IMG/VR virus record: IMGVR_UViG_3300043449_002710
Coordinates: 124,001 to 188,000 of that record
Direction: 5' to 3' (one strand)
Length of the DNA: 64,000 nucleotides
In this document: piece after piece, positions 2,312 to 56,432 of the stretch
Layout of the letters: every line of letters begins with the position of its first letter
Position numbering within the stretch: position 1 is the stretch's first letter
Program-made: the position numbers and the translations under genes
The notes under the pieces: generated by a model
What the model saw: the letters and a program-made list of their open reading frames with translations, nothing else
Databases searched by the model: none
What the model was told of the DNA's origin: nothing

Positions 2312-2340
2312 CCCCTCAATTAACCAAAATCGAAACGGTT

Positions 2341-2559
2341 TTAACCTAACTCTTGGCGGATTTGTCTGAAGGCCGACATCCAATTACGGGTAGATCTCGG
2401 GTCATCGCTTCGGGTTTGGCGAGGGACCACAATCACTTTACGGTCTTTGACCCACATCTCGCCGTGGCGGACTCTGCGCACGTAGACAAAACCCTCTTCT
2501 CGTAAGAGCCTGATCTTGTCTCGGTACTTCGGGGCCTGCTTGATCATGGGCCAATTCAT
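2341..2559 (-). CDS. HicA-like small protein
   Basis: LLREEGFVYVRRVRHGEMWVKDRKVIVVP pattern, 72 aa. Confidence 0.5.
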   Translation of the reverse strand: MNWPMIKQAPKYRDKIRLLREEGFVYVRRVRHGEMWVKDRKVIVVPRQTRSDDPRSTRNWMSAFRQIRQELG

Positions 2560-4808: not shown

Positions 4809-6566
4809 TTAATCCTCATCCGATTTGTAGTACGCAAACGGAAGCCCTTTGCAGAGAGTCCCCTTTTTAATCGCCTTGATGATAGCAGCCGATGTCACCC
4901 CCAAAAAGTCGGCTGCGTGTTTAGGTGTGTAAAAACAGATATTCGTGGAAACTACACGGCAAGCGGATCTCAAGGGACGGGCTTTCTTGGGGGCAGAACC
5001 GTTTTCCCTAAGCCACCTAGCCTTGACCTCGGGCCTAGCCTCTCCACGCAGCACGATATTGATCCAATTCTTATCGATACCGAGCTGATCCGCGATCTTG
5101 GCTGACGGAATTCCGAGTGCTTTGAGTTTGAAGGCTTCGAGCAAATCTTCTTCTGGGATTTGGGTGTAGTCTCTTTTTTTTGGTCCATTCCAAGCTTTGA
5201 AGCGTTCAGTCTTTCGTTCTTTACTAATAAACGAATGAATAGACCCAATTTTATACTTTGACTCAATTTCTTTGACCGAGAGATTGTTAATAAAATAATC
5301 TGAAAAAATGGCACGTATCTCTTTTTCAGTTCTTTTTTTCTTCGAAGTATTCACTTCTATATGAGAAAATTTCTTTTTCCGCTCTGGGTCTATTTTCCCA
5401 TTCAGCAAATGATTTACATAGGTACGACTTGTCTTCAATTCACTCGCTATTTCGGATAACGATTTACCAGATTGGAATAAATTAAAAATAGCGTCTTTTT
5501 CAATTTCAGACATAACCCTTGGTCTAGCTAAGGGCCCGTGCTCTTCCTCAAATCTTCTTAGTAAATGAGGCCTTATTTTACCTGCTTGAATATGTTGAAT
5601 ATAACCAGGGCTCACAGATAAAATTTTTGAAATTTGCTTTAAAGATTTGCCTTTTTTTCTAAGAAAAAAGCTATCCATCAAAACCTTATCTGGTATTAAG
5701 TATGACTCGAAATCATACCCTCGATTCACGTTGTACCCGTTCTCAGTGTGATGAGATTTTAGCTTCTCAATCCACAAAGCTTCCTTGTCTTGAAGTTCTT
5801 TCAATGTCGATGCTGTATCTATTTCCTCGATCCAGAAATTTTCTAATCCAATAGATCGAATCGCTGAATGTATCGGCAAGGGGCTTCCGTTTGTGGAGTC
5901 ATAAGTATGTCGCTGAAATCTGCGAGTTAAGGCCTGAGTAGTCATTCCAACGTAAAGTTTATCGTTTATCTTGTTTTTGATACAATAAATGCTTCCGTGT
6001 ACTTCGGGGTTGCTCGGTTTCAATACATACTTGAAAATTATTTTGGGGGTTTCTTCCACTCGAACCAAGCCAATAGACTCAGCGTATTCTTTTTCTTTTG
6101 TGGACAACCTAACCGCTTTTTGCCAAATATTTTTTTTGTGAATGTAAGAATTTTTTGAATCCGTGTAATGATAAGATGACCGAGTTTTTCCAATTTCTAA
6201 AAAATTGGACGCTTTATAAATAGCTCCACTATGGCCAACTGTAGGATCTGCATAAGATATAACACTGCTGTATTGGGTATTAAGCCTCAACCACTTCAAG
6301 CATTTGCTAATAAAAAAACTAGCTGTGTTTTTGGGCGCTTCTGGCAGAATGACTAACCTACTGAGTTCAATGGCCCGACCATACCTGAGCGCGGATTGAT
6401 GCCTGCTAAAAGAAGAAAAAGTACAGGCACCTAAAAACTTATTTTCTGAATCAAACAAACCAAAACAATGAATGACCGATCGGGAATAAGTCTTAGAATA
6501 ATGATTCTCCGCGATAAATTTTCCTACTTTTTGATCGAACTCAATTCGTCTAACTTCTAGGTTCAT
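4809..6566 (-). CDS. Mom-family (GNAT-like DNA modification) domain fused to GIY-YIG endonuclease with multiple HTH repeats
   Basis: HYS, IELSRLV, ISYADPTVGHSGAIYKASNF (Mom); GSIYCIKNKINDKLYVGMTT..RRF..H, GYN (GIY-YIG); repeated GKSLxxIxxxL HTH units. Confidence 0.8.
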   Translation of the reverse strand: MNLEVRRIEFDQKVGKFIAENHYSKTYSRSVIHCFGLFDSENKFLGACTFSSFSRHQSALRYGRAIELSRLVILPEAPKNTASFFISKCLKWLRLNTQYSSVISYADPTVGHSGAIYKASNFLEIGKTRSSYHYTDSKNSYIHKKNIWQKAVRLSTKEKEYAESIGLVRVEETPKIIFKYVLKPSNPEVHGSIYCIKNKINDKLYVGMTTQALTRRFQRHTYDSTNGSPLPIHSAIRSIGLENFWIEEIDTASTLKELQDKEALWIEKLKSHHTENGYNVNRGYDFESYLIPDKVLMDSFFLRKKGKSLKQISKILSVSPGYIQHIQAGKIRPHLLRRFEEEHGPLARPRVMSEIEKDAIFNLFQSGKSLSEIASELKTSRTYVNHLLNGKIDPERKKKFSHIEVNTSKKKRTEKEIRAIFSDYFINNLSVKEIESKYKIGSIHSFISKERKTERFKAWNGPKKRDYTQIPEEDLLEAFKLKALGIPSAKIADQLGIDKNWINIVLRGEARPEVKARWLRENGSAPKKARPLRSACRVVSTNICFYTPKHAADFLGVTSAAIIKAIKKGTLCKGLPFAYYKSDED

Positions 6567-9340: not shown

Positions 9341-9878
9341 TTAAGGTTTATATAATAATAACCCGAGTCTAAGCTCGATCATTTGCAGGTTGCTTTCTGG
9401 AACGTAAACCCCATTTCTTCCTAACCAAATTTCAACGAAGTCATCACCAGAGTCTGTTTTGGCTACTTGTAGAGAAAATTGCAGGTTGTATGTTCCAGGG
9501 TACGCAAAAATAATATGCGATCCCGAAACAGAAACCCCATGAGCCTCGTCTGTTTGGTTATACGTGATCGTATTGATAGTGGAAGAATTTAACTGAGTAA
9601 CATTACTGAAAAAAGAACCGTAATATCCAAGCGCACCACCAGCCCCGGGCTCACCCATAGGTCCGGTAGGTCCGGTAGATCCAGTAAGTCCGGCAGGCCC
9701 ACTGGGTCACGTGGGTCCAACGACACCCATATCTCCGTCTTCGATGGCTTGCTTCAATGTTTTAGACAGACTGTTTGCTGTGACAAAAATCTTGTCGTCA
9801 TTGGTGGGAAGACGCGCTCAAACCTTGGAGAGTGAGTTCTGAGATGCTTTTGATATCTTCGTTCTGGATTTTGGACAT
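9341..9878 (-). pseudogene. Degraded collagen-containing fibre gene, paralog of 48466..48927
   Basis: MSKIQNEDIKSISEL, frameshift near 9805, then DDKIFVTANSLSKTLKQAIEDGD; in-frame TGA at 9707..9709 at a collagen Gly position; C-terminus looks truncated. Confidence 0.8.
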
Positions 9879-25709: not shown

Positions 25710-25934
25710 ATGTTTCCCACCAACTATGAAAATTTTTGGGACCTTTTAAAAGACGCGGATTTCGCACGTGGGTTTTTGACCCAATGCTACCATGAAGGGT
25801 TTTCTATCCACGGAATTAGGCATCCAGATGAAATTGAAGACATGCCTTGTACCTTGGTTGTGGAGCTTTCTAGGCAGATCTTGCCGTTTTACTACATGGA
25901 AAAAACCCCAAGCCCCAATTACTGGTTTCATTGA
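25710..25934 (+). CDS. Small hypothetical protein
   Basis: Coupled to flanking genes. Confidence 0.5.
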   Translation: MFPTNYENFWDLLKDADFARGFLTQCYHEGFSIHGIRHPDEIEDMPCTLVVELSRQILPFYYMEKTPSPNYWFH

Positions 25935-28900
25935 TGCGAAAGTCTAAAAAGTTTTTGAACCCAGAAGACCTACTGAGTCAGATCATCAGCAGTGATTTTG
26001 ATCTGTCTCAGTTTGACCAAATCGATGAAAGCCATATCCCACAGCCACCCAATTTCATCGATTGGATCACAGGCAGGGATTTCTGTAACGCAACCCTCCT
26101 ACCTTGGCAGGTTGAAGCCGGGATGCACCTGTTCTCAGATTACTGCCCAGAGTGTTCGAACCCAGAATACATCACCGAGCTATTTGATGAATCGATGGCT
26201 GAGATCCTCGATAACATCCAGTTCTTAGATCAAGGAGTTTGCCCCAAGTGCAAAAAGAATCGATTAGATCTTTTCACCTTGGGTGAAAAGCATCCGACAA
26301 AGCCATCGATTAAATCCGAGTTTATTGGAAATTTGGGCCAGAGAAGCGGAAAGACACTGGCCGAACACACCGAAGTTTTAACCCCCCAGGGGCCTGTTGC
26401 CATCAAAGATATCCAAATTGGGGATATCGTTTATGGCTGGAATCGAGACGGTTCTGTTTCTGAAACAAAAGTAGTCAATAAATTTGATCACGGTATTAAG
26501 CCTGTTCGAGACCTGATTTCTAGGGGTAGGGTACTGGCTTCTTGCACCGACGAGCACCGTTGGCTTACGTGCAGAACCAGTCGTTATGGAAAAGGAACTA
26601 GAAAACAAAGAAAATCAGATTTTTTAGAGTTAAAACTCAAAGACTTCAAGGATAACAAAGATATCGCGATTCATCGTAAATTGATCAAGATTCCTTGTGG
26701 GGAAGTTTCGGAACCCCATGCTTATGCGATTGCGGCCCTTCTTGGAGATGGGTGCTCCCGTCAAGGCACCTCAAATACGATAGATATTTCTTCAGGGGAT
26801 CAAAATGTCCCTAAAAAAGTAGCGTCTGTACTCGGAGCACAAACAATTAAACGAAACTGGGAAGATAACTATACTTGGCATATTCGCGCAGGAGATACTT
26901 ATAGCAGGGAAACATTGAACTGCCACTATTACGCGGAATGGTGCAAGGGTAAATATGCCCACGAAAAGATATGCGATCTTGAGACAATAAAAACTTGGGA
27001 TCGTGAAAGTTGCCTAGAATTCCTCGCCGGACTGATCGACACGGATGGTTCCGTACATGGAACTGGGAGACTAATTGTTGCTTTTGGTTGCCAATCCAGG
27101 TCAGTCGTAGAAGCATTCGCCTATTTGGTTTACCGCCTTTTTCAATACAAGCCAGCAATCCACATGGATAACAGACCGAAATACTTCAATGGTCCAATAT
27201 ATCAGGCAAAGGTAAACTCTACTTTTTTTGCTAAAAGAATTTTGAAAGAGATTGATCCTTATTTGGCGAGCCCAAATAGAAAATGGAAACCCGAATACGA
27301 AATGATTGGGAATCATAACTCCCATTCAGATTATACGAAACCCCAAGCTGGTGAACCCTACCTCTGTCAGACTTATGATATTGAAGTAGGGAATGAAACC
27401 AATCTTTATGTTTTGGCCCACGAAGGTCTTATAACGCACAATTCAAAAATGGTCGCGTTGTCCACAAGCTATCAGCTCAATCGCTGGTTGAGTCTTCACG
27501 ACCCGCTAGGCTTTTATGGGCTACCTCGGATGGAAGTGATCTTGGGGACTTTTTCCGCGCTCTCCGCAGAGCAAGCTGAAGAAAACCTCTGGATGCCATT
27601 CAAGGGATTAATCGACGCATCGCCTTGGTTTAAAAAGTACAATGATTTCCTCAAGTCGGAGGAGAAGCGTCTCTCCATTCCGCTTTGTGACGTGAAAGAC
27701 ACCTATATGTTCTATCCGCACAAAAGACTTCTGATCTCTTTCACAGGATCGGATGACCGGAAAAAACGCGGTCGGACTCGATTGTTTGGTGCGATTGACG
27801 AAATCGCTTTCTTGAATTCGGAAGTCGGGACTTCCAAAAAGAAGGTGATGGATGCGGATAAAAACTACGCCGCTCTCAACAACTCTCTTTCCACCATCCG
27901 GCAAAAGGCATTGATGCGATTGGCAGAGGGGCATTTCAATACGATCATGCCCATCATGTATAACGCCTCCTCGCCTTATAACGTCCAAGACAAAATCATG
28001 CGGTTGACCAAATCAGCCCCAGACAATCCCTTTGCGGTAGTGATTCACCGAGCTACTTGGGAGTCGAATCCAGACTACTCAGAAAAAACCTGTCGCGCCA
28101 TCAACCCAGGCCTTTCTCAAGTCGAGTTCGAGCGCGACTTTGGTGCAATCCCCCCGTTTTCGGATTCCCCCTATATTGGGGATGCTCGGGTGATGGAAAA
28201 GCTCTGCGCCCACAAAGATCACTATCGACCTCTTTTGAATGTGACTCGCGAAGTCCATGTCGATATGCTTGGAGACAAATATCTCTTTTTAAGAGCCAAG
28301 GCGCATCAGCTCGATAAGAATACGCCAAGGCTTTTGGCACTCGACAACGGGTACAATCAGAATGCGTTTGGTGCGGCGATCTTTGGCTATGATTCGATTC
28401 AAAAAAAGCCTGTGCTTCAGTTTTTAGTGAGCCTCTACCCAGATCCTCAATCCAATCTCTCGATTCATTTCCCATCGATGTTCGAGAATTTTATTTTGCC
28501 GATTATCCAAGGCCTCAATATTAAGCACGTCTTTTATGACCGCTGGCAGTCCCTTGATCAGATCCAGCGGTTAAGAGATATGAAAATCAACGCCGAAGCG
28601 CATTCGCTTTCTTTTGAGAAAGACATGCTGCCTTTCAAGCAGCAGCTTTTGTCTGGGAACATGGTGCTACCACCACTAGAGATCGCATCCATGCAAGAAG
28701 TCAAAGATGCGGTCAACCCCACGCAGATGACAACAGATAAACCGGTGGCCAATTTGATCTGGCAAACGCTGACTGTGAGACAGGTCGGTAAAAAAGTCTT
28801 AAAGCCTTTGGACGGGGATGACGATCTATTCCGAGCTTTTGTACTCGGGGGATCTCGCTTTTTGTCAGACGAGATCCAAAGAATTTATGCAACTTATGCT

Positions 28901-29035
28901 GGAATCAAACAAGCGGCTCAAAACGCCCAAGGCTTTTTAGGAAGCTTTCATTCTCGAAGCGGGGGAGGCAGTAGTGCAACCCCCAATCGAGGCAATCAGA
29001 TTTCTATCGCCAAGTATCGTGGCTTTTCCAAATAA
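25931..29035 (+). CDS. terL: Large terminase subunit with intein
   Basis: LLPWQ, Walker A GQRSGK/S split by intein, RGRT..AIDE Walker B, ASSP, RNase H-like LALD...YDRWQS...DDLFRA. Confidence 0.9.
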   Translation: MMRKSKKFLNPEDLLSQIISSDFDLSQFDQIDESHIPQPPNFIDWITGRDFCNATLLPWQVEAGMHLFSDYCPECSNPEYITELFDESMAEILDNIQFLDQGVCPKCKKNRLDLFTLGEKHPTKPSIKSEFIGNLGQRSGKTLAEHTEVLTPQGPVAIKDIQIGDIVYGWNRDGSVSETKVVNKFDHGIKPVRDLISRGRVLASCTDEHRWLTCRTSRYGKGTRKQRKSDFLELKLKDFKDNKDIAIHRKLIKIPCGEVSEPHAYAIAALLGDGCSRQGTSNTIDISSGDQNVPKKVASVLGAQTIKRNWEDNYTWHIRAGDTYSRETLNCHYYAEWCKGKYAHEKICDLETIKTWDRESCLEFLAGLIDTDGSVHGTGRLIVAFGCQSRSVVEAFAYLVYRLFQYKPAIHMDNRPKYFNGPIYQAKVNSTFFAKRILKEIDPYLASPNRKWKPEYEMIGNHNSHSDYTKPQAGEPYLCQTYDIEVGNETNLYVLAHEGLITHNSKMVALSTSYQLNRWLSLHDPLGFYGLPRMEVILGTFSALSAEQAEENLWMPFKGLIDASPWFKKYNDFLKSEEKRLSIPLCDVKDTYMFYPHKRLLISFTGSDDRKKRGRTRLFGAIDEIAFLNSEVGTSKKKVMDADKNYAALNNSLSTIRQKALMRLAEGHFNTIMPIMYNASSPYNVQDKIMRLTKSAPDNPFAVVIHRATWESNPDYSEKTCRAINPGLSQVEFERDFGAIPPFSDSPYIGDARVMEKLCAHKDHYRPLLNVTREVHVDMLGDKYLFLRAKAHQLDKNTPRLLALDNGYNQNAFGAAIFGYDSIQKKPVLQFLVSLYPDPQSNLSIHFPSMFENFILPIIQGLNIKHVFYDRWQSLDQIQRLRDMKINAEAHSLSFEKDMLPFKQQLLSGNMVLPPLEIASMQEVKDAVNPTQMTTDKPVANLIWQTLTVRQVGKKVLKPLDGDDDLFRAFVLGGSRFLSDEIQRIYATYAGIKQAAQNAQGFLGSFHSRSGGGSSATPNRGNQISIAKYRGFSK
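26354..27442 (+). mobile_element. Intein (363 aa) with LAGLIDADG homing endonuclease, Thr at position 1
   Basis: TLAEHTEVLT (block A), CTDEHRW (B), ALLGDG and LAGLIDTDG, TYDIEV (F), ITHN/S (G). Confidence 0.92.
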
Positions 29036-30123: not shown

Positions 30124-30212
30124 TGGTGCCGAGGATCGGAGTCGAACCGATACGTCCCTTGCGAAACTCAGGATTTTAAATCCTGTGCGTCTACCAATTT
30201 CGCCACCCCGGC
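30124..30212 (-). tRNA. tRNA-Leu (anticodon TAA), CCA encoded
   Basis: GCCGGGG acceptor, TGGTAGA D loop, CAGGA-TTTAAAA-TCCTG anticodon arm, long variable arm, GTTCGA, ACCA. Confidence 0.95.
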
Positions 30213-45260: not shown

Positions 45261-46104
45261 CCCCTGATTCGTGTGCTTTGGCAAGCAATTTTAAGAATTC
45301 ACAATAGCCTGCCTGATCCAAATACTTCCAGATCACTTCGGCGGGCTGAAATCTCTCAAATCTTCCCACATTCCGATCCAAGACAAACTTCTTTCGAAGC
45401 TCATCGTGCATCTTTTTTCTGCCTTGCCAAACCTCAACAAACTCTTCCACCAATCGATCCACGGCTTGTTTGACCGACAGCTTCTGAGTTTCAATCCTCT
45501 CGTCCACGATTTCAGGATCTCTTGGGTTTTCTTTCTGGGCTTGCAGGGCTTTCTTAAGGACCGACCATTGCCTAGAAACATTCCCCATCAAAAGATCGAT
45601 TTCTTCGGCTTTCTTTTCGGCCATTTCAATGATGGGCTTAAAATAAATCTCAGGATCAAAGTCCTTTGGAAGAATCAAAGGAGGAAGCTTCCAGCGATCC
45701 CGCATCACATCGTAGGAGGCATCGGCAACCTCAACTTGCTCGGTCTGATCCGATGGCTTCACAAAAAGATGGATGACATATCCAGCCCAGGGAATCTCGA
45801 CATTCTTGAAAGCCTCTTGAAGAATCTCTTCATCGCCTTTGAATTTTTCCCAATCAATGTAGCACGAACAGTCAATGTCAGCGCCGCTGTGATACTGATA
45901 AGTCGCCGCTCCGCCATACAACATGACGCCAATCAGATCCGCCCCAAACTTTTTTAGTCGGTAGCGAGCTTCTTTGAGAATCTCTGCGCGAAGCTTGGGC
46001 TGAAGCCTAGGGAGCGGCTTATCTTCTTCATAAAGCCACACCTCTGGCGGAAGAGTCTTGCGCGGAAAATCTAAAATCCCAGCTTCAATTACGTGAGCGG
46101 CCAT
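45232..46104 (-). CDS. Pol-beta-like nucleotidyltransferase with short VIEA leader
   Basis: LYGGAATYQYHSGADIDC; YDV..D.W; GTTATTTTT upstream. Confidence 0.7.
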   Translation of the reverse strand: MAAHVIEAGILDFPRKTLPPEVWLYEEDKPLPRLQPKLRAEILKEARYRLKKFGADLIGVMLYGGAATYQYHSGADIDCSCYIDWEKFKGDEEILQEAFKNVEIPWAGYVIHLFVKPSDQTEQVEVADASYDVMRDRWKLPPLILPKDFDPEIYFKPIIEMAEKKAEEIDLLMGNVSRQWSVLKKALQAQKENPRDPEIVDERIETQKLSVKQAVDRLVEEFVEVWQGRKKMHDELRKKFVLDRNVGRFERFQPAEVIWKYLDQAGYCEFLKLLAKAHESGAIDKLLQAL

Positions 46105-46149
46105 AACTTAAAATAACTCTAGGGATCAAGTTTCCTGGGGTGGGCATCC

Positions 46150-46228
46150 TAATTGCTTGATATAAATACGGTTTTTAAAAAAACTTCCCTGTTGACTGTC
46201 TTTATAAATATATTTATATTGATAATAT
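46150..46228 (+). promoter_or_regulatory. Sigma70-like promoter with IHF-like site and shared 20-mer
   Basis: TTGACT-17-TATATT; TATCAAGCAATTA on minus strand at 46150..46162. Confidence 0.65.
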
Positions 46229-47000
46229 GACAATGCGTAAGATTCAAATTTTTGAGCAAGACCAAAAGTACCGCAAAGACTTGAGCGATTTTTTGATTAT
46301 GGTCCATGGGGCCAAGAGCACCGAGGATGCTTCCGTTTTGGAAGTTCCAGAGGAATTGGACGTGGATGCTTTTCACGGCATCAAGTTGGTGGACACCAAT
46401 GCGCCCAAGCTGCCGCTCATCCAACCTGCGGTTCCGTTCAAGGATCGGCATCCTGAGGTGGTCGAATGGCTCAATAACTACAAAGGCAATTTTGAATTTT
46501 ACTTGAGCTTAAAGTCTCAGCTTGAAGCCAAAGGCAGTTTGTCTGAAAAGCAGGTCGATGCGGTCAAACGTGCTATCGATAAGGACGTGCAGCGAGCGAG
46601 CAAACGGACTTTATCCACAAGTTCTCAAACCGTTCGCTTGTCTTTGTCTGCAGGCGAGATTTTGTTGATCTCCAAATTCTTCGCCCGAAAGCTTGCTGAG
46701 CAAGCAGGTGCAATCCGCCCACACTATGTCTTTGAGGTTTTATCCGTCGAAGCAGAGACTGAGAAAGCTTACAAAGTGAAGCTCCGCATGACTGCTCAAC
46801 GGACCAGCCATTGCGGAGTTTGCGGTTTGACTCTGACGAATCCCGAGTCGGTGGCGGCAGGTATTGGACCGATTTGCGCTGAAAATACCGGAATCTCTTT
46901 CGGGGCTAATTCGTCCTTGGAACTAGCCGAAGCTTTAAAAGAAACCCGCGAGATCGATACTTGGCTACCTAAGAGCGTGATCAAATCGAGGCTGTCTTAA
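46227..47000 (+). CDS. DUF6011-like zinc-finger protein
   Basis: FYLSLKSQL...LSEKQ; [23 protein letters not shown]. Confidence 0.8.
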
Positions 47001-48415
47001 TAAAACTCCTCAATAATGATGCAACCAGAACCGCCGTTGCCACCTTTACCTGAACCCGAGCCACCGCCTGTACCACCCGCACCGACTGTGTAATTAAAAG
47101 TTACACCAGTATAGGGAATAATTGCACAGATATAGCCACCTGCGCCACCACCAGAACCCCCATAATAAGTCGTCCCACCTTCAGCCGGGGCACTACTTCC
47201 GCCGCCACCGCCACCACTACCGGTATTATTGCTGGCATCGGTTGGGGAGGTCAATCCACCACCGCCTGGACCATTTCCACCAAAAAAACTGTTTCCACCG
47301 GGTTGTCCCGCTAAAACCGTCGCGGCAGCAGTGCCGCCGCCATTCCATGTGGCATAACCAGTGCCAGCACTACCAATGACGTTACAAATGACTGTTACAC
47401 CCGTATAGGCTACGGTCCCACCAGTTCCGCCATTTCTACTAGAGGATGTGGCGGCGTTCCCAGAATATGCGGTGAGCGCTATAGTTCCGGCCCCATTTGA
47501 AAACACAGTATCGACACCATCCGTGCCGTAAGCTAGAGATATTCCACCGCCAGTACCACCACCACCACCACCGACCATCTGAATCCGAATATACTTTGCC
47601 GTACTCGGCATGGTGTAGGTTCCAGCTCCAAGCGTTGTTATATAGTGAATAGTCGGTACAGTAGCTGATCCACCACTGCCTGTGGGTCCGGTAGGGCCAA
47701 CATTGCCCGTAGCGCCCGTAGCGCCCGTGGGGCCCGTGGGGCCTGTAGCGCCCACACCTGTCGGGCCGGTAGGGCCAACTAAACTGGCTCCCGTGGGTCC
47801 GGTAGGACCAACTGCACCCTCTGCGCCTGTCGCGCCCGTAGGGCCTACATCTCCTACAGCCCCTGTCGGGCCTACCGCACCATCTAAGCCTGCCGAGCCG
47901 GTCGCGCCCACCGGTCCTTCCAATCCTGTAGGACCAACTGCGCCTGTGGGGCCAACTGCGCCTGTGGGGCCAACTGCGCCTGTGGGGCCTGTCACCCCGC
48001 GCATCCCAGTCGGGCCGGTCGCCCCTCGTGGACCTAAAGGACCACTGGGTCCCATCGGTCCTGTCGCGCCCACTGTTCCTGTCGGGCCAACCGCTCCAAC
48101 CGATCCTGTAGGACCAACCGTGCCACTAGGGCCTGTCGGCCCAGTGGGTCCAAGAGGTCCCGTGGGGCCAGGAATCTGCACAGGACCCGTGGGGCCTGTC
48201 GGTCCTGTCGGTCCTGTCGGACTAGGACCAGAATTCGAAAAGACATCAAAAATTAGAGGGTCATATGTGGTGTTGATCGCGGCGTTATATTGAGTCTGCG
48301 TGATCAAAAAATCGGATAAAGCGGGTACGACCAAATTTTCAGAGGTCAGCCCATAGCTTAAAACAAAAGTTTGCTGCAGTTCTGTCTTGTTACGAATCGT
48401 CCCGTAGTAAGCCAT
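46997..48415 (-). CDS. Collagen-like (GPT-rich) fibre with Gly-rich tip
   Basis: About 60 GXY triplets; VGGGGGG...GGGAGG Gly-rich domain. Confidence 0.88.
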
Positions 48416-48465
48416 TGTGATCCCCTATAGATAATAACCTCAGGGGGATTTGGTATTTGTTTGAA

Positions 48466-48927
48466 CTACGCGAGGTAATAAATCCGCAAGCGATCCGAAG
48501 TGTCCAAGACGGATTGAAGGCCTTTGCCATCCCAACTTAAAAAATCATCAGACACAATAAAATCTTCGTCATAAGTAGCTGGACCGCCGCCGCTAAAAAT
48601 ATCCACCAAAACTTTATTGGGTTCTTTGGGTGCCAATGGAAGAGAGAGACCTTTATCCAAAAGCATCTGGCCAGTGATTTGTGGGTAAATGCAAACTTGC
48701 TGAATCGAATTACTTTCGATTAAACTTTGAAGAGATTGTTCGGCTGCGATAGCGCGAGAAGTCTCTACAGCGGTGAGATCGCCATCTTCTATGGCGTCTT
48801 TCAGAGTTTTATTGACTAAGTTGGCAGAAACAAAAATTTTGTAGTCAGGAGGTAGACTTGAAGCATCTAGTCCTAGATCCAACAACTCGGCTAAACTTTT
48901 GATATCTTCATTCTGAATCTTAGACAT
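48466..48927 (-). CDS. Fibre-associated structural protein
   Basis: MSKIQNEDIKS N-terminus; ETSRAIAAEQSL repeat shared with 36030..38444. Confidence 0.6.
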   Translation of the reverse strand: MSKIQNEDIKSLAELLDLGLDASSLPPDYKIFVSANLVNKTLKDAIEDGDLTAVETSRAIAAEQSLQSLIESNSIQQVCIYPQITGQMLLDKGLSLPLAPKEPNKVLVDIFSGGGPATYDEDFIVSDDFLSWDGKGLQSVLDTSDRLRIYYLA

Positions 48928-48959
48928 ACCGAGCCTTTTACCAAAATTGAATTTTTGTG

Positions 48960-49002
48960 AAAAACTTAATCCCGCTAGCTATGACGCGGGATTAAGTTTT
49001 TT
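48960..49002. terminator. Bidirectional terminator
   Basis: AAAACTTAATCCCGC...GCGGGATTAAGTTTT. Confidence 0.85.
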
Positions 49003-49007
49003 CCTAA

Positions 49008-49847
49008 TTAGACTAAATACCAGCAAATCAATTCTTGACCTACGACAGGTGCTGTACCGAAAGTTAGAGCACTTGCTGTCACCGTATATTGGTCTAAACC
49101 AGGACCTTGAGCAACAAGAAGCCCGTTTCTGAAAACCAAAACAAACCCTGCTGCATTCGGAGTGTGAGTCAAAGTAAATTCAGTTGTTGATCCGTTTCCA
49201 GCAAAGACTTCTTGATAGGGAACATAAGATCCGGCAGGGCCCGCAGGGCCGGTGGGTCCAACAGCTCCATCAGCACCCGCAGGGCCCGCAGGGCCAGTAG
49301 GGCCGTCTAAACCCGCAGGGCCGGTGGGTCCAACAGCTCCATCAGCACCCGCAGGGCCCGCAGGGCCAGTAGGGCCGTCTAAACCCGCAGGGCCAGTAGG
49401 GCCCACCAGACTAACTGGATCAATGAAAGCACGATTGTTAATAGATTGCAGTTTAGTCTGAAGAGGTTCGGAAATAAGTTGAAGTGAAACAGATCCGATT
49501 TCGATCAGCTTTTTATTTAAAGAAGTTCTACCAATAAAAGCTGTTCCTGCAGCAGGTCCATTGAGATCTTCCGCGCCTTCGTCGTCCCAGATCGAATGAA
49601 CCCGAATACCGTTTGTAGTAGCCCCAGGATAAGCCGAGGTTCCCACATCTTCAATCGTGACAATTTTCCATCGATTGTAAGTCCCGAAAAACGGGCTCTC
49701 ATCAACAAAAGCGTCTCCGATTTGAACGTCTGTAACAGACCAACCTTCTAATGTAGAGTCAATGACTTCCCCGATGACTTCCCAAATACCAGAGCCGAGA
49801 TCGGAAGCGCCTACGATATCAAATCGAGCATTAAACTTTTTAGACAT
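49008..49847 (-). CDS. Short collagen-like structural protein
   Basis: GPTGPAG repeats (54-bp DNA tandem); C-terminal [18 protein letters not shown] domain. Confidence 0.85.
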
Positions 49848-49859
49848 GGTAAGCCTCTA

Positions 49860-51224
49860 TTAGAAAGCCAATTTTAATACGCAAGTCACACCTGAGGTTA
49901 AACCGTTAATAGTAAGCCTATCAAAGCCAGCAGAAATTGTGGCCGCAACAGCAACAGTTGCTCCCGAATCTTCTCTCCAAGCGTGATAATTAGGACGCCA
50001 AGCATTGGCTGCACTCGTATTGGTGCCAGCTCCACCGCTTGTTCCATATACAACCGTGAATTGAGTTCCACCGATTGTCGCCATTGGGAGTCTGATTCTG
50101 GCGGAAATCAAATTCACCCCGGCTGGAATTGTAAAAGTTCCAATAGCACCAACGCGAGCAAAAGTTATCCCACTGCCGTCTGCGAAAACTTCCACCTCTT
50201 CATTAGCTGTAGAAGAAGCTATATAACGAGAAAGCGATGCCCCACCACCGCCACCTACGGTAGTCCAACTCGTGTCGTAATCAGAGGCAGAATTTTTGGT
50301 TAATACTTGCCCCATCGAACCACCGGTTGGAACACCTGCACCCGTAGGGCCGGTGGGTCCTGCTGATCCAGCGGTTCCATTTGCGCCCGCAGGGCCGGTG
50401 GGTCCAACAGCTCCATCAGCGCCCGCAGGGCCGGTGGGTCCAACAGCTCCATCAGCGCCCGCAGGGCCGGGGGGTCCAATAGCTCCATCAGCGCCCGCAG
50501 GGCCAACATCACCCTGAGGGCCTGTTGGGCCTCCCGCAGGTCCAGGTTCGCCTTGAGGCCCCGTAGGGCCCGTATCCCCTACCGCGCCAATCGGTCCTGC
50601 CGGGCCCGTAGGTCCAACTTCGCCTGCCGGGCCGGTGGGGCCAGCCGCGCCGTCAGCTCCAGGGGCACCCGGCGCACCAGGAGAGCCAGGAGAGCCCGCA
50701 ATGCCGGAGGGGCCCATATCCCCTTGAGGGCCTGTAGGGCCAGTAGGTCCCGCATCGCCATCAAAACCCGCAGGGCCTGTCGGTCCCACAGGGCCAGTAG
50801 CTCCATCAGCGCCCGCAGGGCCAGTAGCTCCATCAGCGCCCGCAGGGCCAGTAGCTCCATCAGCGCCCGCAGGGCCTGTTGGGCCTCCTGCCGGACCCGG
50901 CTCGCCTTGGGGGCCCGTAGAACCATTTGCGCCTGCAGGGCCTGTCGGGCCTGCAGATCCAGCATTACCCGCAGGGCCTGTCGGTCCCGTAGGTCCGGTT
51001 GCTCCAGGTTGTGGAGTTGGGGGAGGTGGGATAGGATCGCCTTCTAAAATGATTTCAAAAATCAAATGGTCATATTGAGTAGCGGAAGCCACTTCGAGTT
51101 GATCAAAAGTCAAAGGATAAAGACCAAAAGCAGGGACACTTAAGGACTCTTGATAAGTCGAGTAAGCCAAGGTGAAAACTTGCGGGATACCCGTTTTATT
51201 TCTAATGTTCGCTACGTATGCCAT
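49860..51224 (-). CDS. Collagen-like (GPT/GPA) fibre protein
   Basis: About 70 GXY triplets; N-terminus homologous to 46997..48415; [16 protein letters not shown] linker. Confidence 0.88.
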
Positions 51225-51252
51225 TCTTTTTCTCCCTCAAAATTAAAAATTT

Positions 51253-51618
51253 TTACGGTGCTGTATAATTCAAAACTTGTTTGGGTGTGAGCGGTGCCCC
51301 ATTGTCTTGCTGAACCTGCAGCACGTTTTCATAAATCAAGTCTAAGAGTCGGGTTAAAAAACTTACATCCCCACCATTACGAGCATTGCTCACCAAGACT
51401 TCAAAGTCGGCGTCTTCGATCAAAAAAGTTTCACCGGGTCTAAGGTTAATTTGGAAAGCACTCCCATTCCGAATCGGATCTGCCGAGGAAGCGTTAATCG
51501 GTCTTGGGATCAAAACATTCGAGATCGGCCCTAACTGAAGAGCAAAGGCATTTGCTGGGGCCGTGCTAATAACCGGGTGTGAAGCAAGGGCAGTTGGGGT
51601 AAAAGAAATGTTAACCAC
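51253..51618 (-). CDS. Small structural protein (GTG start after GGAGAGG)
   Basis: Late-type motif at 51638..51645; first gene of the fibre operon. Confidence 0.55.
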   Translation of the reverse strand: MVNISFTPTALASHPVISTAPANAFALQLGPISNVLIPRPINASSADPIRNGSAFQINLRPGETFLIEDADFEVLVSNARNGGDVSFLTRLLDLIYENVLQVQQDNGAPLTPKQVLNYTAP

Positions 51619-51694
51619 AAGTTTTTCCTCTCCCAAGAAAATAACTCAATTTTTGTCTCGGTCCTCTTTTGAATAGAATCGTTATTCTTTATAT

Positions 51695-52660
51695 ATGTCC
51701 ACTTTACGAGGTCCAGGACCGGTTCGAAGTTTAAGGCAAGCCATAGAAGACCGAAACGCGAAATTCTCCCGCACAGAAGTCTTAGAGGATGAACCGTACA
51801 AGCAAGCTCTAGAACAGCTCCTCCCTCAAATCGCAGCCGAAAGTGAACAAGCAGCCAAACCCGCAAGAGTCCCGTTTCTTTATTATCGGAAAAAAAGAAT
51901 GGGCAGGCGCTGCTCTTGTTTCCACATCGAAACTTCTCCAGACGCAAATTGTCAGATTTGTTTTGGCTGTGGCTATGTCGGCGGTTGGGATTTACACGGC
52001 TGTCGATCCGAATGGATTGATGTGACCCAAGAAAATTTAAGATTGGTCAATCTTCAAGCCGATACCCAAGCAGGGACTAGACCAGTCTATTTCACCATGG
52101 AGGATGGAACAAACAGATCTTTCTTGGAACTCGATTTAGAGATTGTCAGAAACATCAAAAAAACCCAATGCCTTCAGATCGCGGTTGGAAACAAACGTAG
52201 GGGGGCTTCAGTCGATGCTTTTGTAAAAGCATCGGGGGATTTGAATTTTGTTCCGCTCACGGAAGCTAATTTGGATGCTAGGCTAAATGAGAGTAAGCTT
52301 TCTTTTCGAATCGAATTGAATAGAAACAATACTACAGTCGAATCCCCTAGACTCAGCCATGTCTTAATTCGATATCAATTAGTCCCAGAGATTAGAATGT
52401 ACGGAGATATGAATCTTGGGGATAATGCTTTTGAGTTAGGAGATCTCGGTTTCTTCGATTCGTTTTCCACCTTGAATGTCTACGTCCCACCTAGCTTTGA
52501 TCAGATTAACAATGAAGACTTTTTGATTCGGCAATCCGACCAAAAACGATTCAAAGTCACGCGGTTTCAACGCAATGCTCCACTCGAAGTATTAACAAGT
52601 CACATGGTCACAGCTCGGCTTCTGATCCCTGGAACAGATTCTTTGATTTATTTTCCTTGA
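51695..52660 (+). CDS. Putative head-completion/neck protein with Zn finger
   Basis: GRRCSC..CQICFGCGYVGG; late-type motif upstream. Confidence 0.5.
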   Translation: MSTLRGPGPVRSLRQAIEDRNAKFSRTEVLEDEPYKQALEQLLPQIAAESEQAAKPARVPFLYYRKKRMGRRCSCFHIETSPDANCQICFGCGYVGGWDLHGCRSEWIDVTQENLRLVNLQADTQAGTRPVYFTMEDGTNRSFLELDLEIVRNIKKTQCLQIAVGNKRRGASVDAFVKASGDLNFVPLTEANLDARLNESKLSFRIELNRNNTTVESPRLSHVLIRYQLVPEIRMYGDMNLGDNAFELGDLGFFDSFSTLNVYVPPSFDQINNEDFLIRQSDQKRFKVTRFQRNAPLEVLTSHMVTARLLIPGTDSLIYFP

Positions 52661-52697
52661 TCGTTTTTAGCGGTAGATAATTTGGTTAATAGTATTC

Positions 52698-53759
52698 ATG
52701 CCGCTCAAGATCGCCGTTTACGCTATAGCGAAAAACGAAGAAAAAAATATTTCAAGTTGGTTGGAAAACACAAAAAATGCAGATTTCCGATTGGTCTGTG
52801 ACACTGGAAGTACAGACAAAACCTTGGAGATATTGAAAGAAAACAATATCGAAACTTGCCAGATTACAGTCAGCCCTTGGCGGTTTGACATTGCTCGTAA
52901 TACCGCGCTGAATCTTCTACCTTCCGATATTGATGTCTGCATTTGGCAAGACTTTGACGAAACTTTCAATCCGAACTGGAGAGAAGAATTGGAAAAGAAT
53001 TGGGTGGGTGGGACCACGACCGTCTATCACAAGTATCGAAACAACAATTCTTCCTGGCAATGGCACAGCAAAATCCACGCAAGACACTACTGCATTTGGG
53101 CAGGCTGCGTACACGAAACATTGAAATGGTCTTGTCCCGAAAAAGATATCTGGATTGCAGAGATCTATCTAGATGAAAAGCAAGACCTAGAAAAAGACCG
53201 ATCCGGTTACTTGAAGCTTTTGGAAAAGAAAATATCGGAAGGGGATAACCATTGGAGAACTTTTTATTTCCTATCCTCCGAGTATCAAAAAATTGAAAAT
53301 TGGAATCAGGACATAGCTTATAAGATAAAAAGCTTCCAGTTTTGCCAAGACGGAGGAGTCTCCAAATCCTACATCGCAAGAAACATCGCTATTTCTTACC
53401 AGCAGTTAAAAAACTGGTCGGAAGCTGAGAAGTGGTTAAAGACGGGATTGGATGAAAGCGAAGAAAGAGAAACTCTTTTTGCCTTAGCCTATTTGTATTA
53501 CGCACAGAAAAAATGGGGCGAATGCTACATCTACTCCAAAAAGTGCCTTGAAAAAAAAGAAAGAAGAGACGGATTCACTTTCGATGCGAGAGCCTGGGGA
53601 GAATCGCCTTTCGATTTAGCGGCTTTATCCGCCTACAATTTGGAAATGTATTCAGAAGCTTGTTCTTTGGGGAAGAAAGCCCTTGAATTAAAGCCCAACG
53701 ACCCTAGACTTCTTTTAAATCTCAGAATGTACGAGAACAAAAATGGTCAATCGCGCTAA
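52698..53759 (+). CDS. GT2 glycosyltransferase with TPR repeats
   Basis: YAIAKNEE, DTGSTD, FDIARN, QDFDE, VHE; TPR C-terminus. Confidence 0.92.
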   Translation: MPLKIAVYAIAKNEEKNISSWLENTKNADFRLVCDTGSTDKTLEILKENNIETCQITVSPWRFDIARNTALNLLPSDIDVCIWQDFDETFNPNWREELEKNWVGGTTTVYHKYRNNNSSWQWHSKIHARHYCIWAGCVHETLKWSCPEKDIWIAEIYLDEKQDLEKDRSGYLKLLEKKISEGDNHWRTFYFLSSEYQKIENWNQDIAYKIKSFQFCQDGGVSKSYIARNIAISYQQLKNWSEAEKWLKTGLDESEERETLFALAYLYYAQKKWGECYIYSKKCLEKKERRDGFTFDARAWGESPFDLAALSAYNLEMYSEACSLGKKALELKPNDPRLLLNLRMYENKNGQSR

Positions 53760-54846
53760 GACTTGTGTTTATGCCATCTGTTTGAATGAGATTAAATTCG
53801 TGGACGCTTTCATGAAGCATTCGAGTGAAGCGGATTTAATTCTCGTTTGTGATACCGGATCGACGGACGGAACTGCAGAGAGGTTAAAAGAACTCGGAGC
53901 TACAGTTCATCGCATCACTCAAAAACCTTGGCGCTTTGACGTGCCTAGGAATACGGCGCTGAGCCTTGTACCTAGTGACATCGACATCTGCCTCAGTATC
54001 GACTTAGACGAGCAGCTTCAGCCTGGGTGGAGCGCCGCTTTAGAAAAAGTGTGGCAAGAGAAACAAGGAACAATCAAGCGGGTGTCCTATGACTACACTT
54101 GGAATTGGAAAGCAGACGGAACGCCCGATGTCAGATTCTTTACCGATAAGATCCACCATCGCCATGGTTACCGCTGGAAGCACCCTTGTCACGAAACTCT
54201 GTATTGGGAAGGAGAAGGGTCTGAGGTTTATGTTCAGATCCCTGAGATCAAGCTCCATCACTTTGCCGACCCTACAAAAAGCCGAAGCCAGTATCTGCAT
54301 TTATTGAAGCTTGCCGTCGAAGAAGACCCCAATGGGGATCGGATGCGGCACTACTACGCTCGCGAGCTAATGTTCAAAGGTCAGTACGAAGAAGCCATTA
54401 AGCACTTTGAGCATCATTTGAAAATGCCCCAAGCTACTTGGAAAGAGGAGCGCTGCGCAAGCTTGAGATTCATTGCTCGTTGCCACAGGTATCTAGGCAG
54501 AAAAGATCTCAGCCAAGAATGGGCCATCAAAGCGATTTTGGAGTTATCTACGACCCGCGAGCCTTGGTTGGACTTGGCTCAATCCGCCTATTTCAATCAG
54601 GACTGGCCCACTTGCTTTTGGGCTGCCACCAAATGCTTGGGCATTCAAAACAAGACTTTGAGTTACATTGCGGATGCGAGCGCCTGGGGATTTGAACCTT
54701 ATGACTTGGCTGGGATTAGCGCATGGCATCTGGGCTTAAAAGAAAAAGCCAAGGAATATAGCCTAGAAGCCTACAAACGGTTTCAAGATAACCGATTAAA
54801 AGCCAACTGTTTAGTCTTAGGATGGAAGCCTGACGAATTACCTTAA
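53743..54846 (+). CDS. GT2 glycosyltransferase with TPR repeats
   Basis: YAICLNE, DTGSTD, FDVPRN, IDLDE, CHE, YYARE; TPR C-terminus. Confidence 0.92.
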   Translation: MVNRAKTCVYAICLNEIKFVDAFMKHSSEADLILVCDTGSTDGTAERLKELGATVHRITQKPWRFDVPRNTALSLVPSDIDICLSIDLDEQLQPGWSAALEKVWQEKQGTIKRVSYDYTWNWKADGTPDVRFFTDKIHHRHGYRWKHPCHETLYWEGEGSEVYVQIPEIKLHHFADPTKSRSQYLHLLKLAVEEDPNGDRMRHYYARELMFKGQYEEAIKHFEHHLKMPQATWKEERCASLRFIARCHRYLGRKDLSQEWAIKAILELSTTREPWLDLAQSAYFNQDWPTCFWAATKCLGIQNKTLSYIADASAWGFEPYDLAGISAWHLGLKEKAKEYSLEAYKRFQDNRLKANCLVLGWKPDELP

Positions 54847-54863
54847 GGGTTATTTTTTAGAGT

Positions 54864-56432
54864 ATGAGAGCCTACTTTAAATTCCCCACCCTTGCTGCGA
54901 TTGTTCTAGGGCGTAATGTTGTCAACGTTCCTGGGATTGAGGACTTTGTCGAAAAATTCGAGCAAAACGATCCAAGAATCGACAACTGGCTGAAGCGGAA
55001 TCTGAGGAATTGGCTCATCAAGGATTACGACCGTTTCAGGCAGATCACACACCAAGAAGGAAACCCCGACTGGGTAGGCAAGGCCTTGGAGCGCGGTGAG
55101 AAAGTCTATGAAGTCAGACTTGATCGAGAGATCTTTGACAAGATCTCTCATGTGATCGATTGGTTCAAATCGGACGACTCGCCTAAAAGGCTGGATGCCG
55201 TAACGGTGCCCGAAGCCCTCAAGCAATCGGACGCCTGGACTGAGAAGCTTACCAAAAAGAAAGTCGATCAAGGGATTGCTCTTGCGGGAGAAGAGATTTT
55301 TAAAAAGTACGGTGACGGGTATTCTTGGCGCAAATTGGTTTCCGAAGAAGCTTTGGTTCTTGAAGGAAAGAAAATGGGCCATTGCGTGGGCGGTTACTGG
55401 AGTTCTGTGCAATCAGGGGAGACCGAGATCCTTTCCTTACGCGACCCTAAAAACGAACCTCACTGCACAGTTGAAATTAGCCACAACGAAGTACGTCAAA
55501 TCAAAGGCAAGCAAAACAAATCGGTCATCAAAGAGTATTGGTCTTATGCACAAGACCTTTTGAAAACTTTGAAAGAAAACGGCGTTTATGTCGGTGCTAA
55601 CAACTTATCCAATATTGGTCTCTATGAGATCGATGGAAAGATTGTCACTTTCAAAGAACTTGTAGCAAACCTAGACTTAGTGAAAGCTCTTTTGAAAAAA
55701 CATTTCGGTATTGATGTGACGGATGAAATGCAAGTCCAAGTTACCGAAGATGGAATTGAAGTCGGATCTAAATTTGTGGATATCCTTTTGGGGTTTTTGC
55801 CTCTTCCACGTAGACAAATTGAAGCCTATAAAAATCTCATGGAGGATTCTTACGACACAGAATTTTCCATTCACGACCACGATGTCACCGATCTCTATGA
55901 CTATGTAGAAAAGCATTACCCCAAGGCTTACAAAAGATTGGTGAAGCTTCTTGAAAGTGTCGCAACCGAGGAAGAAGCTAAAAACGAAGACTACTTGAGC
56001 CACCGCTCGGCAAGCACTTTCTTGAAGGTGTATTCCGATGAATTGCAGCCGATTTATGATGCCGCGATCTCAGGAATCTCTGACGGCTGGAGTGTTGGAA
56101 CACAAGACGCTGCTCACAAATACGTCAAAGATAAATTGTCGGAGTACGGTTGGCTGTGCGATTCCTATACTTCCGAAGATGGAGACGGTACAGTTTGGCT
56201 TCATCTCAGTTCTAGCGCAATTGCGGATGGTTATTTAGGTGATCTCTACAAAGACCCCTACGGAAGAAGAGATGGCTTTAATAGCGAATTCGATGAAGAA
56301 GTTGCCAAGGAGCGCTTTGTCGATGCGCTATTTGAGAATGGTTTCCTAAATCAAGCGGATATGGCGAGTAAGAAAAAATTAAAATCCGCTTTGGAGTATC
56401 CGGCTTTGGGAAAAATCCTAACTAGATTTTAA
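54864..56432 (+). CDS. PcfJ-like domain protein tagged at both ends
   Basis: EGKKMGHCVGGY..ILSLRD...PHCTVEI..QIKGKQN; FPTLAAIVLG and YPALGKILTRF*. Confidence 0.75.
   Translation: MRAYFKFPTLAAIVLGRNVVNVPGIEDFVEKFEQNDPRIDNWLKRNLRNWLIKDYDRFRQITHQEGNPDWVGKALERGEKVYEVRLDREIFDKISHVIDWFKSDDSPKRLDAVTVPEALKQSDAWTEKLTKKKVDQGIALAGEEIFKKYGDGYSWRKLVSEEALVLEGKKMGHCVGGYWSSVQSGETEILSLRDPKNEPHCTVEISHNEVRQIKGKQNKSVIKEYWSYAQDLLKTLKENGVYVGANNLSNIGLYEIDGKIVTFKELVANLDLVKALLKKHFGIDVTDEMQVQVTEDGIEVGSKFVDILLGFLPLPRRQIEAYKNLMEDSYDTEFSIHDHDVTDLYDYVEKHYPKAYKRLVKLLESVATEEEAKNEDYLSHRSASTFLKVYSDELQPIYDAAISGISDGWSVGTQDAAHKYVKDKLSEYGWLCDSYTSEDGDGTVWLHLSSSAIADGYLGDLYKDPYGRRDGFNSEFDEEVAKERFVDALFENGFLNQADMASKKKLKSALEYPALGKILTRF

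Follow-up and report, generated by a model that had tools for sequence, protein, structure and literature searches.

The stretch of DNA analysed here, which we call the window, comprises 64,000 nucleotides of the IMG/VR virus record IMGVR_UViG_3300043449_002710 (bases 124001-188000 of a record of 223,260 bp, estimated to be 81% complete). Judged from its sequence, the source is a jumbo phage without close relatives among GenBank phages, and a megablast search of window positions 46000-56000 against GenBank phages returned zero matches. Besides a portal protein, a large terminase and a tail-fibre-like protein, the window encodes the locus that is the subject of this work, at which three collagen-like genes (colA, colB and colC) lie divergently from two genes for glycosyltransferases (GTa and GTb) that join a family 2 glycosyltransferase (GT2) domain to tetratricopeptide repeats (TPR) and resemble SgtA of Clostridioides difficile. 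The placement of these five genes in the initial annotation of the window agrees with our open reading frame (ORF) and family searches, and the features of the locus are as follows:

46997-48415, minus strand: colA, putative collagen-like fibre protein of 472 aa (Pfam Collagen, E 6e-16)
48466-48927, minus strand: 153-aa ORF within the collagen operon (no Pfam or PHROG match)
49008-49847, minus strand: colB, putative fibre protein of 279 aa (Pfam Collagen, E 4e-9)
49860-51224, minus strand: colC, putative collagen-like fibre protein of 454 aa (Pfam Collagen, E 1e-28)
51253-51636, minus strand: 127-aa ORF at the head of the collagen operon (no family match)
51637-51694, no strand: 58-bp spacer between the divergent operons, with one promoter-like motif per strand (from sequence and genome-wide enrichment)
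51695-52660, plus strand: 321-aa ORF with a CxxC...CxxC pattern, first gene of the glycosyltransferase operon (weak match to phrog_38102, 'virion structural protein', E 6e-4)
52698-53759, plus strand: GTa, soluble SgtA-like GT2 (GT-A fold) of 353 aa with C-terminal TPR (Pfam GT2, E 2e-7; TPR; phrog_13126, E 9e-69)
53743-54846, plus strand: GTb, soluble SgtA-like GT2 of 367 aa with TPR (phrog_13126, E 2e-104)

All three collagen-like proteins match the Pfam Collagen family above its curated cut-off, and their genes are the sole collagen genes of the 223-kb record. ColA is composed of an N-terminal domain of ~60 aa, ~59 G-X-Y triplets (residues 68-251) and a Gly-rich C-terminal domain. In colB, 20 G-X-Y triplets separate an N-terminal domain of 148 aa from a C-terminal domain of ~70 aa. 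In colC, which shares a similar N-terminal domain with colA, 74 triplets (residues 74-297) are followed by a C-terminal distal domain of tail-fibre type. Threonine occupies 25-40% of the Y positions of the three proteins, with the upper value in colA (40%) and the lower one in colC (25%). The initial annotation had described the repeats as dominated by GPT and GAT triplets; this description suits colA, where GPT is the commonest triplet (23 of 78) and GAT occurs 6 times, and fails for colB and colC, where GPA is as common as GPT or commoner (8 GPA vs 5 GPT in colB, which has no GAT, and 14 vs 13 in colC). The collagen operon is tightly spaced on the minus strand, in the order 127-aa ORF, colC, colB, 153-aa ORF and colA, and the 153-aa ORF yielded weak Atlas leads, all at or below 0.90, to Phage_T7_tail, T4_gp9_10_N and DUF4183.

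The PHROG tail-fibre matches of the collagen proteins rest mostly on the repeats, and the C-terminus of colB carries a weak tail-fibre match of its own (phrog_18673, E 5e-4). The non-collagen C-terminal domain of colC has seven relatives with 39-64% identity, two of which (54-64% identity) were traced to contigs of other phages, where gp25-like and baseplate-J-like genes precede them at a distance of a few genes. We infer that colA, colB and colC are virion components, with the tail fibre as their likeliest location. Those relatives of the colC domain do not carry collagen repeats and their loci contain no GT2-TPR gene, which fits a glycosyltransferase that tracks the collagen repeat and not the fibre tip. 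A central collagen-like region with G-x-T triplets, a trait of BclA-type proteins, is present in all three proteins. None of them matched PF18573 (BclA_C) at E ≤ 0.01, and their membership in the BclA family was ruled out on the absence of this domain. Furthermore, no prolyl-hydroxylase-type 2-oxoglutarate oxygenase (PF13640) was found in the genome.

The spacer between the two operons contains GAGTTATTTTC at 51637-51647 on the minus strand, abutting the annotated start of the 127-aa ORF, and GTTATTCT at 51681-51688 on the plus strand, facing the glycosyltransferase operon, so that the divergent motif pair noticed in the initial annotation does exist. The motif is also present as GTTATTAT 15 nt upstream of colA. 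Matches to its consensus, GTTATT[ATC]T, number 41 across the genome, and for 24 of the 245 ORFs a copy is placed 0-54 nt ahead of the ORF. The core 8-mer is enriched ~20-fold upstream of ORFs, and the motif is probably a phage-specific promoter element. Scans for sigma-70 promoters and terminators performed no better than on shuffled sequence. The collagen operon and the glycosyltransferase operon share the same promoter-like motif, which we count in favour of the fibre-glycosylation reading set out below. As a side observation, the motif often reads RGTTATTTTTA, copies precede positions 48415 (colA, as above), 54864, 46104 and 62784 of the window, and several very large ORFs (2451 aa and 1220 aa) are preceded by it.

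The genes for GTa and GTb overlap by 17 nt, and their products are 36% identical to each other. Both are proteins of ~360 aa that match Pfam GT2 above the cut-off, present TPR matches and contain no membrane segments. The motifs DTGSTD, D87-x-D89 and H150-E151 are invariant across 31 diverse relatives, and GTa retains DTGSTD, D-F-D and H-E. An AlphaFold2 (AF2) model of GTb, built on the alignment of the 31 relatives, attained a predicted local distance difference test (pLDDT) score of 93.7 and consists of a Rossmann-like beta/alpha N-terminal half followed by helical repeats (residues 182-358). The 321-aa ORF ahead of the pair gave no informative lead in an Atlas search and is not kept beside the glycosyltransferases of other phages.

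The best solved full-length folds for the GTb model are those of SunS and ThuS (Foldseek E 1e-15, template modelling score [TM] 0.64-0.70). The second-tier matches include the wall-teichoic-acid rhamnosyltransferase RmlT and TarP, both GT2 enzymes acting on envelope glycans, and they bear on the proposal that GTa and GTb modify teichoic acid, O-antigen or capsule of the host, thereby blocking superinfection or changing the receptor. Such a role would agree with the PHROG category of the family ('moron/host takeover') and its usual annotation as 'beta-1,4-glycosyltransferase', with the genes of this phage for making dTDP-rhamnose, and with the usual, published interpretation of phage glycosyltransferases near fibre genes (PMC10202952, PMC7029224). 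However, RmlT and TarP match GTb over the GT-A half only (TM ~0.4), while the matches to SunS, ThuS and SgtA extend along the entire protein; furthermore, the phage enzymes possess neither membrane segments nor Gtr-type partners, and an envelope target would leave the linkage to collagen genes unexplained. We therefore regard host envelope glycans as quite improbable substrates.

A different role is hinted at by the TPR region, for which PF23558, the peptide-binding TPR of collagen prolyl 4-hydroxylase, was matched by 14 of the 31 family members at E ≤ 0.01, all below the curated cut-off; since TPR families cross-match, we retain this resemblance as a hint only. Combined with the tight translational coupling to fibre genes observed in many phages, it could indicate that GTa and GTb mainly help collagen-like fibres to fold or assemble, as TPR chaperones or assembly factors, and transfer sugars little or not at all. 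Against this stand the DTGSTD, DxD and HE motifs, whose invariance in 31 diverse members argues that catalysis has been maintained; we consider such a role very unlikely. When GTb was modelled in complex with residues 60-110 of colA, the score was 0.02; no controls accompanied this prediction, and we count it neither for nor against any reading.

The characterised counterpart of these enzymes is SgtA, a protein of 358 aa with a GT-A domain (residues 1-260) and TPR (residues 262-358), encoded directly upstream of bclA3, which in vitro transfers beta-O-GlcNAc onto Thr (and Ser) of BclA3 collagen-repeat peptides with GPT repeats, using UDP-GlcNAc and Mn2+ (PMC7157674). GTb was searched against 401 genomes of one clostridial order, and 20 loci with weaker matches were scanned for the published BclA3 peptides, which were present in 4 of them. 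In one (L190), an ORF holds both peptides, MSRNKYFGPFDDNDYN and VGPTGPMGPRGRTGP, the N-terminal peptide included, and because the 361-aa glycosyltransferase at L190:8244-9329 lies directly upstream of this ORF, we identify it as SgtA or its ortholog. A collagen ORF lies within ~500 bp of the glycosyltransferase in 12 of the 20 clostridial loci.

Against the SgtA ortholog, BLASTP gave 24% identity across 319 aligned residues for GTb (E 5e-21) and 23% identity along the full length for GTa (E 8e-10). An hhalign comparison of the phage family profile with a profile of 13 SgtA-like proteins aligned 341 columns (99.7%, E 2e-25), and the DTGSTD, DxD and P-x-HE motifs are common to the phage family and the SgtA group. 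By these profile and pairwise comparisons, GTa and GTb are true but distant homologues of SgtA. The traits of an SgtA-type enzyme, namely a GT-A domain with its motifs, a C-terminal TPR in a soluble protein of ~360 aa, full-length homology and a nearby collagen gene (1.5-5.7 kb away in the window), were all found in the phage proteins. Every testable trait is thus present, at low identity, and sugar transfer is predicted. The resemblance to the BclA system put forward in the initial annotation consequently stands for the enzymes, as homologues of SgtA, and for the collagen proteins, which lack BclA_C, does not extend to membership in the BclA family.

The family to which GTa and GTb belong is large, with 2,207 proteins at E ≤ 1e-5 in a metagenome protein set, some of them on contigs of 290-365 kb, and at least 482 relatives in IMG/VR. 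We surveyed 82 IMG/VR loci, defining a collagen-like ORF by at least 8 consecutive G-X-Y triplets and counting a side of the glycosyltransferase if its flank reached at least 5 kb. A collagen-like ORF was present upstream of the glycosyltransferase in 30 of 46 phage loci, compared to downstream in 1 of 49, and in total 43 collagen-like ORFs were found in 459 kb of upstream sequence vs 4 in 529 kb downstream. Many of these ORFs end 6-25 nt ahead of the glycosyltransferase start, and in four phage loci, including records of 345 kb and 389 kb, a glycosyltransferase pair is divergent from the collagen gene, as in the window. After clustering the glycosyltransferases at 70% identity, the pairing holds in 17 of 26 informative clusters. 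The other proteins of the window have zero matches in the 82 loci, so conserved synteny with other window genes does not explain the pairing. The pairing is also present in an isolated phage, Actinomycetia phage DSL-LC01, in which a pair of genes annotated as collagen is located two genes upstream of a glycosyltransferase with 45% identity. Of the two associations that the initial annotation had proposed to look for across phages, that of GT2-TPR with collagen is borne out by these counts, and that with rml genes is not (0 of 82 loci within 10 kb).

The same survey is the place to weigh the proposal that the GT2-TPR enzymes glycosylate other proteins, such as capsid or tail-tube subunits or host flagellin or pilin, with the collagen genes being mere neighbours in a variable fibre region. 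TPR-bearing glycosyltransferases do act on varied proteins: SunS and ThuS modify small peptides, and the flagellin O-GlcNAc transferase GmaR is among the fold and family matches. Furthermore, one third of the informative phage loci, and Pseudomonas phage PaBG, present no adjacent collagen ORF. Mere neighbourhood does not readily account, however, for a strong, one-sided association with collagen genes that recurs in otherwise unrelated contexts, in phages and bacteria alike, and the sole characterised homolog acts on collagen repeats. We consider this proposal unlikely.

The bacterial survey covered the best 80 of at least 590 cellular relatives (43-50% identity). Almost all of these 80 belong to the Bacillota, mostly Clostridia, with one metagenome-assembled genome (MAG) assigned to the Actinomycetota (L109), and the carriers include Lacrimispora, Caproiciproducens, Desulforamulus, Brevibacillus, Alkalibaculum and many MAGs. 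The bacterial glycosyltransferases often form tandem pairs right behind 1-3 collagen ORFs with (GPT)n repeats and threonine at up to 100% of Y positions; where the flank reached at least 5 kb, a collagen ORF was located upstream in 17 of 44 loci vs downstream in 1 of 58. The locus is chromosomal, and not part of a prophage, in the complete chromosome of Caproiciproducens sp. R1 (L121), where three collagen genes are followed by two glycosyltransferase genes, a nucleotidyltransferase, a GNAT acetyltransferase and two DegT aminotransferases, and one Caproiciproducens collagen protein presents a sub-threshold BclA_C match. As a separate observation, the genes after the glycosyltransferase pair (L121, 12303-19102) look like an amino-sugar pathway on a BclA-like locus.

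These bacterial loci also bear on the view that the enzymes glycosylate phage DNA against restriction, as phage glycosyltransferases often do, and for which one may adduce the Mom-family ORFs in the genome and the PcfJ/ArdA-like ORF beside GTb. The bacterial homologues are located in chromosomal collagen loci similar to those that encode exosporium bclA in spore-forming bacteria, and neither the TPR architecture, nor the homology to protein and peptide glycosyltransferases, nor the collagen linkage points to DNA. We accordingly consider DNA glycosylation extremely unlikely.

In a rapidly computed maximum-likelihood phylogeny, with the SgtA-like group set as the root, GTa and GTb fall in separate phage clades, whereas the bacterial pairs fall in a single bacterial clade; the separation of these clades indicates that tandem pairs arose separately in phages (L023-L055) and in the Bacillota (L111-L183). 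Such convergent pairing suggests that having two enzymes is advantageous. The bacterial clade nests among phage sequences, and because the root branch is long we draw no direction of transfer from this topology. On a side note, the glycosyltransferases of L056 (IMG/VR) and L107 (uncultured Clostridiales) are near-identical (branch lengths 0.02-0.03) and each has a 45-triplet collagen ORF directly upstream; L107 is probably a prophage or a mis-binned phage.

Taken together, these data make it likely that GTa and GTb work in the manner of SgtA as protein O-glycosyltransferases, with Thr or Ser residues of the G-X-Y regions in colA, colB and colC being modified either ahead of fibre assembly or while it proceeds. 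The genes, their domain architecture, the intact catalytic motifs, the homology to SgtA and the conserved gene order with collagen genes are observed, and from these we infer the acceptor, the modified residue, the sugar and the benefit to the phage. The locus would constitute a fibre-plus-modifier module, in which a collagen operon, probably encoding tail fibres, is paired with a divergent operon for two soluble, cytoplasmic glycosyltransferases. Late in infection, the TPR domain of each enzyme would grip a freshly synthesised fibre protein along its extended G-X-Y chain, and the GT-A domain, through its DxD motif and Mn2+ or Mg2+, would use a nucleotide-sugar as donor and attach the sugar to the hydroxyl group of Thr or Ser residues in the Y position, such that the assembled fibres would bear O-glycans. 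Since neither paralogue has lost its TPR domain or its DxD motif, we favour two protein-directed enzymes over an initiator and an extender, and the sequential action of the two enzymes assumed in the initial annotation loses its appeal for the same reason. GTa and GTb might differ in sugar or in sequence context, or act as a heterodimer. Helix stabilisation or shielding as the purpose of the modification is conjecture.

Several points weigh against this reading. Glycosylation by the phage family members is predicted from their genes, and the placement of the three collagen proteins in the virion is deduced from domains of tail-fibre type. Collagens of bacteria and phages in general often have threonine-rich Y positions, which are by themselves no mark of glycosylation. 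With only 22-24% identity to SgtA, acceptor and donor specificity may differ from those of that enzyme. In about one third of the informative phage loci, the flanking sequence retrieved contains no collagen ORF, and Pseudomonas phage PaBG has no collagen gene annotated beside its glycosyltransferase homolog. Finally, the loci are phylogenetically related, so that our counts overstate the number of independent events.

With respect to the donor, UDP-GlcNAc is our default guess by analogy with SgtA, and dTDP-L-rhamnose made by a phage rml operon is also possible. The following genes are relevant to sugar supply and to further glycan processing:

window 1-393, minus strand: 5' part of rmlA (NTP_transferase, E 1e-34)
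window 336-1352, minus strand: rmlB (TIGR01181, E 4e-131)
window 1379-1750, minus strand: 123-aa ORF (no family match)
window 1766-2383, minus strand: S-adenosylmethionine (SAM) methyltransferase (family search)
genome 122595-123464, minus strand, just left of the window: rmlD (TIGR01214, E 1e-85)
genome 122096-122599, minus strand, just left of the window: rmlC (PF00908, E 4e-66)
genome 194404-194979 (minus strand), 201078-201857 (plus strand) and 201867-203246 (plus strand): three further glycosyltransferase-like genes, two GT2 and one DUF5672

The rmlB, rmlA and methyltransferase genes reported at the left edge of the window were recovered by family matches, and the rmlC and rmlD genes that the initial annotation had suggested seeking beyond this edge are both there (PF00908, E 4e-66, and TIGR01214, E 1e-85, respectively). 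The operon reads methyltransferase, 123-aa ORF, rmlB, rmlA, rmlD, rmlC on the minus strand, and by its gene content the phage is predicted to encode the complete dTDP-L-rhamnose pathway. This operon, methyltransferase included, lies 45 kb from the collagen and glycosyltransferase genes. rmlC is absent from all five other glycosyltransferase-bearing phage records searched, two of which are complete, and no rml gene was found within 10 kb of the glycosyltransferase in any of the 82 phage loci, as compared to ~5 of 80 bacterial loci with rml genes nearby. Judged by co-occurrence, a functional coupling of the rml genes with the fibre-modifying genes was not found. Rhamnose as a donor is hence possible yet unsupported, given that rml genes do not co-occur with the phage glycosyltransferases, and we rejected the claim that rhamnose is the sugar transferred. 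The methylated deoxysugars invoked in the initial annotation are left without support by the same distance and by the same absences, and methylation of the transferred sugar is pure conjecture. The products of the three further glycosyltransferase-like genes could extend the fibre glycan or may instead glycosylate some unrelated target.

Among known systems, the closest to this locus is SgtA/BclA3, with which it shares an enzyme of ~360 aa joining GT-A/GT2 and TPR, the catalytic motifs, and the proximity of the enzyme gene to a G-x-T-rich collagen-like gene; the locus would thus represent a phage variant of this O-glycosylation system. It departs from SgtA/BclA3 in its phage context, in having two tandem paralogues in place of one, in collagen genes that are divergent and not co-directional, in likely targets that are of tail-fibre type without the BclA C-terminal domain, and in an identity of 22-24%. 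By analogy, the fibre proteins may work like BclA filaments while standing outside the BclA family.

In Bacillus anthracis, the collagen region of BclA bears rhamnose/anthrose oligosaccharides and the genome encodes rmlACBD (see PMC6222408, PMC6947953). GPT-type collagen-like proteins and a predicted complete dTDP-L-rhamnose pathway likewise occur together in the phage genome, and a few bacterial loci of the glycosyltransferase family have adjacent rml genes. In contrast, the phage rml genes lie 45 kb away and do not accompany the fibre-modifying genes in other phages, anthrose-type genes were not found in the phage, and its collagen proteins are missing the C1q-like C-terminal domain.

SunS and ThuS (PDB 7msn, 7msk and 7msp) resemble the phage enzymes over the whole chain in combining GT2 with a helical, TPR-like peptide-binding domain, but share only 15-16% identity with them and modify small bacteriocin precursors, whereas the phage enzymes have collagen-like proteins as neighbours. 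No glycocin precursor or export genes were noticed beside the phage glycosyltransferases in the ORF lists, which were not searched specifically for small-peptide genes. Glycosylation of collagen-like fibrils in giant viruses is the subject of a review (PMC9614988). Mimivirus encodes collagen-like proteins, sugar-nucleotide pathways and glycosyltransferases, and carries hydroxylysine-linked glucose and complex fibril glycans. It is alike in uniting virus-encoded collagen-like proteins, a sugar-nucleotide pathway and glycosyltransferases, and different in its eukaryotic hosts, its chemistry and its enzymes.

To our knowledge, glycosylation of phage virions has been demonstrated only for a few mycobacteriophages. 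According to a passage in PMC12619734 citing Freeman et al. 2023, glycosyltransferases of these phages put O-glycans on virion proteins, at the C-termini of capsid and tail-tube subunits. Phage-encoded glycosyltransferases and virion-protein O-glycans (predicted in our case) are common to both systems, and the mycobacteriophage system has no collagen-like substrate. Most of our literature searches turned up no paper connecting phage GT2-TPR enzymes to collagen-like fibres, and where papers meet such phage glycosyltransferases, the passages concerned ascribe them to DNA or O-antigen modification (PMC10202952, PMC7029224, PMC12619734).

The remaining features of the genome are side observations. 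Directly after GTb, and as a further gene of the same operon, a 522-aa PcfJ-like protein is encoded (window 54864-56432, plus strand) that has a weak match to ArdA (antirestriction) and the same upstream motif. A 585-aa ORF (window 4809-6566, minus strand) joins a Mom-family domain (E 2e-31) to a GIY-YIG nuclease domain and several helix-turn-helix (HTH) motifs, and a second ORF (genome 115820-117583, plus strand) presents a weak Mom-like match; these ORFs are hints of DNA modification or of a homing-endonuclease fusion. A short collagen-like match at window 9623-9736 (minus strand; 25 bits, below cut-off), with its frame broken by one TGA, adjoins a 105-aa ORF (9341-9658). A separate 353-aa ORF (genome 118203-119264, plus strand) contains a Gly_rich_2 domain (PF21722, E 1e-9), and the Gly-rich C-terminus of colA (window 46997-47650) resembles it in composition. 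The large terminase ORF (window 25931-29035, plus strand) is unusually long (1034 aa) and its PHROG match is split in two blocks (137-416 and 481-1021), and these two properties indicate that it may contain an insertion or an intein. One tRNA-Leu (anticodon TAA) is located between the terminase and portal regions (window 30124-30212, minus strand), and most of the large neighbouring ORFs had no match in Pfam, PHROG or NCBIfam.

Phage glycosyltransferases near fibre genes are routinely annotated as 'morons' that modify DNA or O-antigen. The present analysis ties a large family of them to collagen-like fibre genes and to SgtA, the sole biochemically defined collagen-repeat O-glycosyltransferase, and phage particles may commonly bear collagen fibres with glycans, a trait that has escaped recognition until now. 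If this is true, many phage fibres would be glycosylated, with consequences for host recognition, for particle stability, for how antigenic therapeutic phages are and for how thousands of genes are annotated. The family would furthermore provide compact, soluble enzymes for G-X-T repeats, useful in engineering bacterial collagens, and it would become testable how the nap of the spore exosporium arose and how it is related to phage fibres. We put forward, tentatively and as a rather doubtful extension, that collagen and SgtA-like GT2-TPR enzymes form a mobile two-part module shared through common origin and transfer by phage tail fibres and the spore nap of Firmicutes, in which case hundreds of environmental and gut phages would carry collagen fibres coated with O-glycans.

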